Part shown: one piece after another, positions 36,101 through 42,100 of the stretch | Position numbering within the stretch: the stretch's first letter is position 1 | How the letters are laid out: each line of letters starts with the position of its first letter | DNA from: Ophelia neglecta | Taxonomy: Eukaryota | Assembly (NCBI GenBank): GCA_965285935.1 | Contig: OZ260661.1 | Span: 38,192,001-38,256,000 of the forward strand | DNA length: 64,000 bases | Direction: 5' to 3' | The notes under the pieces: model-generated | Told to the model about the DNA's origin: nothing | What the model saw: the letters and a program-made list of their open reading frames with translations, nothing else | Database searches by the model: none | Translations under genes and position numbers: made by a program

Positions 36101-39100
36101 ACAGAGAAGTTGTGTGGCCTCTATGACAAGCTGCCTGCCATTATGGACCCAGCTGACATCGAGTCGGTGGAGGCCAAGTGGGGGTAATGTCTCAGCAGCT
36201 TGTGAATAGATCTTATCTTGTAAAACAAAATACCAACTGGCTTACAATTTACAGCATAATACAAAATAATATTGATTAAGTCTGGTAGAGATCGGGCATA
36301 AAGATTTCATGATACTTGAATATCATACTCTTCAGTGCTTTTGCTGGGCTTCGGCAATCAGCCATTTGCTGATTGAAATCAATAATTCTGGATACTTTGT
36401 AAAGAGCACCAGGCATTACATTTAGTCTTGGCATTTTCGTCACTGAGTTATATTATTTGCAAAAATGGCTTTGTTCTCCCATAAGGGCATACATTGAGAG
36501 AACATGACAAGAAACAAATTTTAGTAATAAATTTGCAATTTTCTTCGAGGGTTATCCAGTTGTTGTGTAGACACAAGAGAGATCGATAGATGCAACATAA
36601 TCCCTTATTGTTTATCTCAAATGTGTATCTACATATCAAAGGCAGTGATATAGATTGCTCACTAGAAAAAAATTGTAATCTCTGCAAGAAAAGTATGAAT
36701 TGCACAGATAAGTAGTTAATCAGATGTGCCCGAACCAAAATGAGTGCACCAATTTAACAAAAAAAGTCAATAGTGACTTGACAATGACGGCCGCTTCCCA
36801 CCTGTCACAGATCCGCCTCCTCTCCTCTGGTCTTCTTACCAGATAGTAATTACTGTGATGTTAATATGTTATCATTGTACGTGTAAGTTAAATGTCTTGC
36901 CAAATTTATTAATGGCCCAAAATGTGAATGTCTCGAACACACATAAATTGTCCTGAACTTTTTAGACTATTCAGGACAATTGTCCCGACACATTCTCAAC
37001 CCAGCAAAATCACTTGATACTCTGGTTAGACTCTGGTATGACTTCTTTTTGAGTCCTATTTGAATCTAGCCTACAGTGCTTGAACTCCCTTCAACAGTAA
37101 ACATTCTAGATTTACACTAGAATCACACTCATATGATTAGAGTATCATACTAAATCACAACTGTATAAATAAATTTGAGCTTTTCCATTGTTTGGTTTTG
37201 TTTTCAGCTTGGACGTCATGTGTGATCATGATGACCACCTGACCTTTGCCGGTAAACGTCAGATCATCTCCTTCCTCTCTTGGCTCGACTACTGTGATCA
37301 GCTGGTACAAGTTGCTCATCCAGAGGTCGCCACTGCTTTGGCCAAACAGATCAGGGAACAATACATGGAGAAAGTATTGGAGCCGAAGCTACTACAAACG
37401 TAAGCTATGGTCAGCTATGCTCCACTACCACACCCTCTGCATCCTTGCTGCTTTGTCCACTATTATATTATAAATATTTGAATATCATGAAATATGCCAA
37501 ATGTAATATCATGTTTATTTACCCCATAAATTGCATTTATTGAGGTAACTTGTCTGTATTTTTTCTCATAAAAATTATGTAGACATGTATCTAGTGTTAC
37601 CGGGTAGTATTTGTATTTATTTTTATATTAGGCACTTAATTGAAAAAATCTATCCATTCTATTAAATCAACAATGTACATATGTGTTTCTATAAACTTGA
37701 AGGCTAAAGGGACCAAGATTATTGTCTTTGTACTTCTGGTCAGAAGGAGAGGCCATGTTTTATATGTGTGTTTGTACTTCAGGTCAGAAAGAGGGGCCAT
37801 GTTTTATATGTGTGTTTGTACTTCAGGTCAGAAGGAGGGGCCATGTTTTATATGTGTGTTTGTACTTCAGGTCAGAAGGAGGGCCATGTTATATATGTGT
37901 GTTTGTACTTTAGGTCAGAAGGAGGGCCATGTTTTATATGTGTGTTTGTACTTTAGGTCAGAAGGAGGGGCCATGTTATATATGTGTGTTTGTACTTCAG
38001 GTCTGAAGGAGGGGCCATGTTTTATATGTGTGTTTGTACTTCAGGTCAGAAGGAGGGGCCATGTTTTATATGTGTGTTTGTACTTCAGGTCAGAAGGAGG
38101 GGCCATATTTTATATGTGTGTTTGTACTTCAGGTCAGAAGGAGGGCCATGTTATATATGTGTGTTTGTACTTCAGGTCAGAAGGAGGGGCCATGTTTTAT
38201 ATGTGTGTTTGTACTTCAGGTCAGAAGGAGGGGCCATGTTTTATATGTGTGTTTGTACTTCAGGTCAGAAGGAGGGCCATGTTTTATATGTGTGTTTGTA
38301 CTTCAGGTTTGAAGGAGGGGCCATGTTATATATGTGTGTTTGTACTTCAGGTCAGAAGGAGGGGCCATGTTTTATATGTGTGTTTGTACTTCAGGTCAGA
38401 AGGAGGGCCATGTTTTATATGTGTGTTTGTACTTCAGGTCAGAAGGAGGGCCATGTTTTATATGTGTGTTTGTACTTCAGGTCAGAAGGAGGGCCATGTT
38501 TTATATGTGTGTTTGTACTTCAGGTCAAAAGGAGGGCCATGTTTTATATGTGTGTTTGTACTTCAGGTCAGAAGGAGGGCCATGTTTTATATGTGTGTTT
38601 GTACTTCAGGTTTGAAGGAGGGGCCATGTTATATATGTGTGTTTGTACTTCAGGTCAGAAGGAGGGGCCATGTCTTATATGTGTGTTTGTACTTCAGGTC
38701 AGAAGGAGGGCCATGTTTTATATGTGTGTTTGTACTTCAGGTCAGAAGGAGGGCCATGTTTTATATGTGTGTTTGTACTTCAGGTCAGAAGGAAGGCCAT
38801 GTTTTATATGTGTGTTTGTACTTCAGGTCAAAAGGAGGGCCATGTTTTATATGTGTGTTTGTACTTCAGGTCAGAAGGAGGGCCATGTTTTATATGTGTG
38901 TTTGTACTTCAGGTCAAAAGGAGGGCCATGTTTTATATGTGTGTTTGTACTTCAGGTTTGAAGGAGGGGCCATGTTGTATATGTGTGTTTGTACTTCAGG
39001 TCTGAAGGAGGGGCCATGTTTTATATGTGTGTTTGTACTTCAGGTCAAAAGGAGGGCCATGTTTTATATGTGTGTTTGTACTTCAGGTCAGAAGGAGGGC

Positions 39101-42100
39101 CATGTTTTATATGTGTGTTTGTACTTCAGGTTTGAAGGAGGGGCCATGTTATATATGTGTGTTTGTACTTCAGGTCAGAAGGAGGGGCCATGTTTTATAT
39201 GTGTGTTTGTACTTCAGGTCAGAAGGAGGGGCCATGTTTTATATGTGTGTTTGTACTTCAGGTCTGAAGGAGGGGCCATCACAGCCACAGCCCACCTCTG
39301 TCTTTGTATTAGACTTGTTTCTTCATGGACTCTTCTAGCAGGTAGGATGGGCTGTTATTAAACTTGTTATGATTCACACTGGGGCAAAATGAACAAAAAT
39401 GTGTTTCAAACTGAGTAAGTTATGACATCATGGTTATATCATCAGTGGCAGATCCAGGATTTTAGGAATGGGGGGAGGGGCAACATTTTTCAAGGCTGAC
39501 AAGGCAAATGTGTGAAAGTTATTTATATATCGAATTACAACTTGGCAATAACAATACATGAAAAGTATGTTTACACGCAGGTATCAAGCTGGTTCATAAT
39601 GTGTTAATACCTTCAAATATCGGACATTCCTCTGTACATCAGGTAATTGAACAATGCAGTTTGTTATCCTGTTTATCAATGATACACATTTCCTTGCAGA
39701 GTTTGTATATTTTACTTTGGGCGGTGAGAGGAGTCCGGAAACGCTTGCTGTGCCATCAAGTCATAAACTTAGACACAAGCTACTGGAACGCTGCAATCAT
39801 TTGTCAGAAGAGGTGAGCTTCTCTGGCAAATCACTACAATCTCTATGGCCTGGAATCTCTTTTAGTTATATGACATTATTATCAAGTCAGATGGCAGTTA
39901 AGTTTGAGATATTTAGGTTTAATGAATTACTCTTGCAATCCTGAATATATCCCGGGGGAAATTCTGGGCCAGGCCATTTGGAGGCCTGCTATGTTAATAG
40001 AATTAAAATGTTTTGAATTTAATTTTAGAATTAGAAATTAACGTCTTAATATGAAATGGACATAAACGTTTATTTAATGGTCAGGGAATGATATGATCAA
40101 TATTATCAGTTTATTAAGGATCAAATTATATATTAGAATGAATATTAGTTAATTTTGAGTAGAACCCCATCAGAGCTACAACATTTGGGCTTAGCAGCTC
40201 TAAGTTCAAACTCCCCCACCCCCACCCTTGTGTTGTTTTTAGTAGAACCTCCGGATCATTGTATGTACGAAGGCCTCTTGTAGTGCTTTGTGTTACAATG
40301 TTCCAAGGAGTCCTCCCTGAAAGGCATGTTTTACATTGTGATAAACACAAGTGGTAACAATTAATGTGTGTCTCACACATGCCCACTGGAATGGATATTG
40401 TCAAAAAACCCCACAAGGCCACAATGTTGAAACATGTCTTTTGTTGTGTTATGGGTTCTAATCTGTAACCGCTACAATACAATATAAATACACTGTCTTG
40501 TGTTTCAGCTGTCCATTACCACATTGAAATTATTTGAAACACTCCTATTGAAAGAGAATGACTTTGTTACACACAACCTTATACTCAGGAACCTTCTTGG
40601 CCGAACCTACTACGACCAATCTAAAGATAACGTGCAGTCTCAAACTTGTGAAAATTCAGTTTCTGACAATACCAGCTCTTCCCATAAAACAAGTGATGAT
40701 TCTAAAGTAGAGGAAGCCAACGTGGAAATAGAAAATAGTATTAAGGATGAAAGAATTCCTGAGGACCATGTGGAAGATAGGAATTTGCCAGAATGCTCTA
40801 AGGCTGCAGGCAGCCTAGATGTATTGTCTCAATCTAGTCTTGAAGAACAGCTTGTCTCAGATAAGGATCAGGCCCTGGAGAACGGACCGCTCTCAGATTT
40901 GTCTCCCCATAGTTCAACAGGTCTGTATTAATTCTACACTTATCAGAGAACCTCTGATTTTTTCAAATTAGATGAACCAAGAAGTTTGTTAATATGTATG
41001 TCAGGGTAGAAATGAGAATTTTTAATGAATGAATTGAGTATTTATGTGCTATTTGACCATTTTTTTTCTGTATTAGTCTAGTGTTTTAAGACATTGATAT
41101 AGACACATGATTATACAACCTCCTGGCCCTAATCATGTCCCATGTTGTTATTTATACCTGACAGAGTTTGATGGCAGTGTGCCCTCCTCTCCTGGATGTC
41201 ACAGTCAAGGCAGTACAGACTCTGTACACCATATTGTTAACAGGTAACCTCAATCACCAATATCACATGGTGTACTTCCATGGCATGATACCCTCCTGTG
41301 TTTAACAACAACCTGCTTATATAGGGCTTTTTTTAAATGTTGGGGGTGGGGACTGAATTTTTGCCCTTCCCTCCCCCCCCCCCTCCCCACACACACACAC
41401 TCATTTCCACATATCTTCTTCATATGCCTTCATTAACTTTAATCAGCAAGTCGTACAGGTTTTGAAAGCCAAATGTACATATACCAGTACTACTACTGCT
41501 GGTTGTACAGGTCGTCTGGTTATTGTTGTGATGATGCATAGTCAAAAAAAACACATTAGATTTTAGAACTTTTCAGTTAAAAGATTATTTGTTCCAGGCC
41601 TACATGTATAAGTTTCCTATTTTGAGTTGTATGGTTTCAGCTTCCTCCATATTGTCCCTGAAGAAGCCAAGTCCTCGTACGAGACAGGTGACACTGGATA
41701 TGACACATATCTCAGGGATGCTCATAGACAAGTAGGGCTATTTGTCCTAGAACTAAACTTTTTTTTGTTTGTCTATGGGTGATAAAAATATTTCATAGAA
41801 ATAACAGATATTTAACTTTGATAGTAATTAGATGTTGGGTTGTAAACTTTGCATTTAAAATGAAAATATCGTAGCTTAACTTAAGTTATCTTTGAATTCA
41901 AGACAACACTACTATTATTTCATATTCAATAATTTTTGATATATAAAATATACTAAATACATGTTTACTTTTATACCTGTTGTGTATACATATAACTATG
42001 TGCTTTCAGTATGCAGAACTGGGGTCCATGTGTCATGGATATCAGTGGCCCCATGAGCCTGTCTGTGATCCAGCCTACATTACACAGTTCTTCTATGAAG

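Follow-up and report, generated by a model that had tools for sequence, protein, structure and literature searches.

A splice-junction minisatellite reiterates the intron 8 acceptor of an FHIP2-like gene in Ophelia neglecta

An FHIP2-like gene with an array at the exon 9 border

We analysed a 64,000-nucleotide (nt) stretch of the Ophelia neglecta genome (assembly GCA_965285935.1, contig OZ260661.1, positions 38,192,001 to 38,256,000, forward strand), called the window here and numbered from its first letter. It contains a conserved cargo-adaptor gene (FHIP2-like) whose intron 8 ends in a minisatellite, and every intact repeat of this minisatellite carries a copy of the intron's 3′ splice site. 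The array belongs to a type described elsewhere as splice-junction 'mirages'; it is lineage-specific, its last acceptor is probably the one used, and the internal copies are probably silent or nearly so. Four other accounts of the array, as an assembly artefact, an exonised repeat, a recursive-splicing device or a set of leaky decoys, are weighed below.

The exon layout, obtained by tblastn with orthologues, runs from 30886 to 45955. Exons 7, 8 and 11 match the Pfam RAI16-like family at consecutive profile positions, and the exons of the gene are all intact. Apart from this gene, the genome (762 Mb, 223 contigs) has a single RAI16-like gene, located on contig 7. Exons were searched singly, by reference, and pieces were joined in scripts solely to count frames and stops. 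The parts of the gene that frame the array are as follows.

About 35990-36184, plus strand: exon 7 (Pfam RAI16-like 141-198)
37208-37399, plus strand: exon 8 (Pfam RAI16-like 207-266, E 3.4e-17; tblastn to orthologues P0006 and P0016)
37400-37719, plus strand: unique, repeat-free 5′ part of intron 8, 320 nt
39262-39341, plus strand: exon 9, 80 nt, starting with GTCTGA (the ancestral state) and followed by the donor GTAGGA
39700-39812, plus strand: exon 10, continuing the frame from exon 9
From about 40506, plus strand: exon 11 (Pfam RAI16-like 328-358)

Exon 8 ends in ...LLQT with the donor AAC/GTAAGC (slashes mark splice junctions). Exon 9 aligns to SETGAILATAYL, SESGAISAVVYV and SEIGVLTATSLL, which come after LLQT, LLQL and LMQT, respectively, in three full-length orthologues. 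A preliminary description of this DNA had held that only the last acceptor leads into conserved coding sequence, and the alignment of exon 9 directly behind the LLQT of exon 8 agrees with it. Intron 8 is 1,862 nt long, and its unique 5′ part probably represents most of the ancestral intron. In genomic open reading frame (ORF) fragments from other species (P0004, P0005 and P0008), LLQT, or LLQA in P0008, reads straight into SESGA..., which suggests that the position of intron 8 is not common to all animals.

A 43/44-bp unit spanning the 3′ splice site

The array is one minisatellite with a unit of 43/44 base pairs (bp), for which Tandem Repeats Finder (TRF) gives 35.8 copies with 95% matches at a period of 44 and, in addition, a higher-order period of 131. 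It is the sole large tandem array in the window, and comprises the following features.

37723-39279, plus strand: minisatellite array (TRF, unit table), with the exon head GTCAGAAGGAGGGGCCAT
37720-37756, plus strand: degenerate 5′-edge copy, the 36th (3 mismatches and 1 gap relative to the consensus in a local alignment)
37781-39217, plus strand: 34 internal pseudo-acceptors, AG/GT (site script, frame count)
39260-39261, plus strand: AG of the terminal copy, the sole acceptor yielding conserved protein
37640-39358, plus strand: open frame of 573 codons, in phase with exon 9, through the entire array (ORF listing)

Each unit joins 26 nt of the tail of intron 8 to 18 nt of the head of exon 9. 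The intron tail carries a candidate branch point, TTTAT (A at -21), a GU-rich pyrimidine tract and a YAG (Y, pyrimidine), and the 26-nt tract preceding each acceptor is alike, reading catgttttatatgtgtgtttgtacttcag. By script count there are 35 YAG/GT sites, 33 with CAG and 2 with TAG, their AGs running from 37781/82 to 39260/61 at an acceptor-to-acceptor spacing of 43 or 44 nt, and GT directly follows the AG in 35 of 35. Half of the units are of the 43-nt form, in which one G of a G-run is missing. The 34 internal units fall into 14 sequence types, with exon-like starts that read GTCAGA (24 copies), GTCAAA (4), GTTTGA (4) or GTCTGA (2); the terminal copy has GTCTGA. This last copy follows the unit up to GGCCAT, that is, for 18 exon nt, beyond which the sequence of exon 9 diverges. 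The purine-rich GAAGGAGG downstream of the real site also appears to be present in the internal copies. At the other end, the 5′-edge copy reads CTG/GTCAGA and is thus dead as an acceptor. No selection against decoy AGs was seen among the copies: the YAG is kept in 34 of 34 internal copies and lost only in the degenerate edge copy.

These data bear out the anatomy given in the preliminary description, namely a unit made of the last ~26 nt of intron 8 and the first 17-18 nt of exon 9, 35 intact YAG acceptors with AGs at about 37781-39260, a GT after every AG, and GTCAGA in most internal copies (24 of 34 in our unit table). The dilemma that it drew from them, that near-identical decoys must be dealt with before the real site is reached, also stands, as 34 identical, self-sufficient decoy acceptors lie upstream.

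The array is real and local

Read support came from contigs of three runs of one sample, compared with 37100-39700. Read-derived contigs cover both flanks to the array edges and then break into short unitigs within the array. In the three runs, the array unitigs have 2.8-30 times the depth of the flanks; in the assembly, their 31-mers are present 4-13 times. The reads thus back a multi-copy array, not an exact copy number, and the depth ratios (2.8-30), set beside the assembly counts (4-13), are too noisy for alleles to be called in this one sample. That the assembler collapsed, expanded or invented the array is hardly credible. The data come from a single sample whose contigs are unable to span the array; against this, both array edges are seen in read-derived contigs, and the depth of array words exceeds that of the flanks 3-30-fold, which is of the order of their count in the assembly.

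All genome matches of a 263-nt piece of the array, searched against the 762-Mb genome, fall inside the array itself. An origin from a transposon or dispersed element was rejected, the unit having no copies elsewhere in the genome. In the unique part of intron 8, the contigs of two of the three runs replace 3 nt at 37415-37419 with 35 other letters, and the third run has the reference form; this variant is probably a heterozygous indel.

A relative carries the junction once

With the exon 8 product we found a related fragment, P0113 (83% identical), on a 20-kb ENA contig, L009. There, exon 8 ends at 4083, followed by an intron 8 of 96 nt (4084-4179) and an exon 9 of 80 nt (4180-4259). The relative's single acceptor reads ttctaatag/GTCTGAAGCAGGAGCCATAAC, that is, TAG/GTCTGA. 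Between Ophelia and the relative, exon 9 (80 nt in both; L009:4180-4259 in the relative) is 81% identical, and both exons start with GTCTGA. No tandem repeat was found at the relative's locus. Because the relative has a single junction without the array, the array is younger than the split of the two lineages. The abutting GT is no designed feature either, since exon 9 always began with GT (codons AC/G TCT GAA), the array-free relative included. The representative library gave no orthologue closer than 64% identity, and a protein search for relatives with the exon 9 end of the array ORF gave no matches.

The distribution of unit starts fits homogenisation inside the array together with a constrained functional edge: GTCTGA is kept at the terminal copy, and 32 of the 34 internal copies have derived starts. 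One of these, GTCAGA, has spread within the array and is carried by most internal copies. The degenerate 5′-edge copy agrees with this picture. From the reads, the genome search and the relative, we conclude that the array is real, local and lineage-specific.

The FHIP2 introns of the relative measure about 96-120 nt (L009:3586-4700), as opposed to 358-1,862 nt in Ophelia (35990-40600). Introns are generally larger in this lineage, and the array is not the only cause.

Comparison with known splice-junction minisatellites

Minisatellites in which an edge monomer spans an exon/intron border have been described in the human genes F7 (37 bp, 5-9 copies), IFI6 (6-16; 25 pseudo-donors), CBS, LMNB2 and PDGF (PMC1557585). 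In F7 the pseudo-donors are functional but silent, whereas IFI6 and CBS also use the two nearest the exon (PMC1557585). The amphioxus 'mirages' lie on both sides of exons; in BflGb6 the 3′ end of an intron, along with the 5′ portion of exon 2, is repeated, and reverse-transcription PCR indicated regular splicing (PMC3087553). Edge copies of these mirages escape homogenisation (PMC3087553), and the amphioxus Adh, TnC and PGBD5 mirages occur without aberrant mRNA (PMC3902484).

Several of the features that define the F7-type and mirage arrays are found here: the unit falls within about 10-200 bp, it comprises intron and adjoining exon, an edge copy is the authentic gene junction, and the array derives locally from that junction. 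As in amphioxus, the junction-spanning unit keeps its AG/GT signals in many copies and the edge of the cluster stays outside homogenisation. In BflGb6, however, the unit is 150-160 bp long and present in 3-6 copies, as against 43/44 bp and 35 copies here, and the Ophelia array is from another phylum. With the five human loci it shares a monomer that spans the boundary and reiterates the authentic splice site, the exon-proximal site being used in those genes. It differs from them in that they reiterate the donor, with the authentic copy first, whereas the Ophelia array reiterates the acceptor and has the authentic copy as its last. The selection logic, involving the branch point, U2AF and exon definition, is for this reason unlike 5′-to-3′ donor scanning. 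NAGNAG and other close tandem acceptors also present several AGs that compete for one upstream donor, but those share a branch point and tract and lie 3-18 nt apart, whereas each AG of the array has its own tract and candidate branch point and follows the previous one by 43/44 nt. The array is an acceptor-side member of the known splice-junction minisatellite, or mirage, kind, with a short unit and a high copy number.

An open frame and an invariant segment

The array is open throughout in the phase of the gene, which calls for caution in annotation. The first intact AG lies 493 codons (1,479 nt) ahead of exon 9, in the same phase. Of the 34 internal acceptors, ten share this phase and meet no stop before exon 9; the other 24 reach a premature stop. 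This arrangement raises the possibility that the first intact acceptor, at 37781/82, is used on a first-come-first-served basis or by intron definition, in which case exon 9 would extend to 1,559 nt and encode an in-frame repeat of 493 residues, always or as an isoform. An exon 9 frame that is open from 37640 to 39358, with the first AG in phase, arises in 3.6% of unit-order shuffles. In addition, the distance between the donor and the first acceptor is close to what it was for the ancestral acceptor, the only copy further upstream being without an AG.

An open frame is nevertheless cheap in this array, as the consensus unit is stop-free in every frame and stops come solely from eight variant units. 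Several of these stop-making variants are copies of each other, which brings the true figure for openness nearer to 4-9% (p nearer 0.04-0.09). The hypothetical insert, with 12% Cys, 13% Val and 0 Asp, Asn or Trp, would lie inside the conserved RAI16-like domain, and the frame rotates through the three unit phases. None of the orthologues compared has an insert here, and the search with the exon 9 end of the array ORF found no similar database protein. Exonisation of the array from its first acceptor is accordingly very improbable, and translation of the array is most unlikely. The Pfam matches of the array ORF (PIG-H, DUF3974 and others) were set aside as repeat noise; four of the five have no stretch that passes alone.

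The second pattern concerns where the units vary. A 19-nt stretch (unit positions -22 to -4) that leads from the candidate branch point to the AG is free of all 11 variant types, most of which fall in the exon-derived part. The invariance of this stretch may reflect chance (p about 0.03), selection or a mutational cold spot, which are indistinguishable. The open frame and the invariant segment are both weak, post hoc signals.

The proposed recursive splicing of the array

The preliminary description read the array as a possible ratchet for recursive splicing. Exon 8 would be joined to an internal AG, the donor AAC/GTCAGA would be regenerated at the junction, and the intermediate would be spliced onward until the last copy is reached. 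In favour of such a device, 35 of 35 sites are AG/GT, and the regenerated donor is not hopeless, matching the consensus at 6 of 9 positions, compared with 7 of 9 for the authentic AAC/GTAAGC. GTC donors also seem to be in use in the window: the GTCAGT donors that had been pointed out at 30965 (+) and 28333 (-) are present and coincide with exon ends identified from homology or from a protein motif. At 28300-28420 on the minus strand, an exon end is followed by the donor G/GTCAGT. The motif PKNYQVW in this exon we take to mark a protein prenyltransferase alpha subunit (FNTA-like), encoded by a minus-strand gene upstream of FHIP2.

The remaining evidence speaks against a ratchet. As set out above, the AG/GT is inherited and occurs in the array-free relative. 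The sites are not conserved either, the 96-nt intron of the relative having no internal AG/GT array. The ratchet points described in Drosophila and vertebrates share with the array a 3′ splice site that abuts GT. Zero-nucleotide recursive splicing, however, has been described in introns of 11-133 kb, with removed segments of at least 2.6 kb and with 1-6 sites per intron that lie kilobases apart, are conserved and have strong TT-rich tracts and GTAAGT-like donors (10.1101/006163); none of this is found in the Ophelia intron, which is 1,862 nt long with 35 sites at 43/44 nt. At 43-44 nt, a lone unit probably falls short of the length needed for excision as an intron by itself. The donor half of the internal copies, GTCAGA, has C at +3, and the two GTC donors of the window, G/GTCAGT, have G at -1 and T at +6, neither of which the regenerated site offers. 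Nor would a ratchet explain the final choice of the last copy, since each round of re-splicing meets the remaining decoys. With intron size, spacing, site number and conservation all unlike those of described recursive introns, the ratchet proposal is not upheld and recursion is highly unlikely. The description had itself called the regenerated donor only moderately strong; exon 8 does end in AAC, as it stated, but the site, matching at 6 of 9 positions and without the -1 G and the +6 T, is weak. It had also reasoned that the decoys are either skipped or re-spliced, and of the two options skipping agrees with the F7 and amphioxus precedents, whereas re-splicing is not supported.

A related notion, equally improbable, is that internal copies are used and the array corrects itself, by re-splicing from AAC/GTCAGA and by tolerated in-phase long isoforms, so that copy number and unit order set the output of FHIP2. 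The sole hints of this are the open exon 9 frame (3.6% of shuffles) and the invariant segment between candidate branch point and AG (p about 0.03). If true, it would amount to short-range recursive splicing at a minisatellite, which is undescribed.

Probably silent, possibly leaky decoys

We consider it likely that the array is a lineage-specific splice-junction minisatellite whose last acceptor is used and whose internal copies are silent or nearly so. Under this model, a segment of roughly 44 bp, with 26 nt of intron 8 and 18 nt of exon 9 on the two sides of the 3′ splice site, would have been duplicated in tandem and expanded by slippage or unequal exchange to about 35 copies, taking a formerly short intron to 1,862 nt. 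By far the most mature mRNA would come from the last acceptor, the one next to the exon. This is likely because the terminal copy alone continues into the remainder of exon 9, with a good donor, CAG/GTAGGA, 80 nt downstream of it, so that exon definition would favour it. On this view, splicing would make little or no use of the 34 internal copies, which would be pseudo-acceptors comparable with the pseudo-donors of F7 intron 7 and the duplicated acceptors of the amphioxus globin, Adh3 and TnC genes, and the array would be a tolerated by-product of minisatellite turnover, not a device. Masking of the decoys by RNA structure was considered and rejected, as the folding of four units together with exon 9 was not better than that of shuffled sequences (z = 0.29).

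Several observations weigh against silent decoys. Protein conservation is the one line of evidence from which we infer use of the last acceptor. Each internal copy appears to be a full 3′ splice-site module, with candidate branch point, tract, AG and GAAGGAGG, and the last few lie within exon-definition range of the true donor, where they would give exons of 124, 168 and 212 nt. Classical duplicated-acceptor experiments at times favoured the upstream copy. The exon 9 frame is open through the whole array with the first AG in phase, which is unexpected if the array is never read, and the 19 nt from candidate branch point to AG are invariant in 34 of 34 internal copies (p about 0.03). Finally, IFI6 does make use of the two pseudo-sites that lie closest to its exon (PMC1557585).

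These points lend some weight to a leakier version, possible though clearly less likely, in which the last acceptor dominates and the nearest few internal copies, or the first, are used to a measurable extent. Out-of-phase products, expected from 24 of the 34 sites, might stop early and be degraded; the copy number and unit order of the array, as a variable-number tandem repeat (VNTR), could in that event modulate FHIP2 output, which we regard as an equally tentative proposal. The identity of the 3′ splice-site modules in all copies favours leakage. Products with 44 or 88 additional nt would be frameshifted and those with 132 in frame. The human loci supply a precedent, IFI6 using its two exon-nearest pseudo-donors constitutively and CBS also using two (PMC1557585). 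In the other direction, the pseudo-sites of F7 are silent and the amphioxus mirages are reported not to disturb splicing (PMC1557585, PMC3087553, PMC3902484). It is because of the open frame and the invariant segment that leaky decoys keep the probability that we assign to them.

Whichever acceptors are used, the locus is a natural experiment, placing thirty-five apparently complete, identical 3′ splice-site modules in front of one conserved exon. It is the acceptor-side mirror of the F7 minisatellite, which was earlier used for studying donor choice. Clean use of the last copy, if true, would favour exon-side context over first-come-first-served pairing with the nearest acceptor. Use of internal copies, if true, would tie minisatellite length to gene dosage.

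A minisatellite-rich neighbourhood

In the 264 kb around the window (G000:C1:38092001-38356000) there are 10 arrays in which a period of 25 or more is repeated in no fewer than 6 copies, roughly one array every 26 kb. On inspection of ORFs only, without homology searches, the nine other arrays showed no obviously coding ORF at an edge. Among them are a 46-bp unit in 44 copies and a 54-bp unit in 30 copies, side by side at -35471 to -31834 relative to the window, and a 31-bp unit in 56 copies at -21062 to -19353; a 32-bp array occurs twice, 10 kb apart, at -91218 and -80827. The units of some neighbours include donor-like words on the minus strand, for example CAGG/GTAAGC at -14076 to -13724, with no adjoining exon evident. 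We estimate that ~9% of randomly seeded arrays in a gene of this kind (about 30 junctions, ~15 kb, a 44-nt seed) would straddle a junction, and on that estimate junction arrays are to be expected in a minisatellite-rich genome, if they are tolerated.

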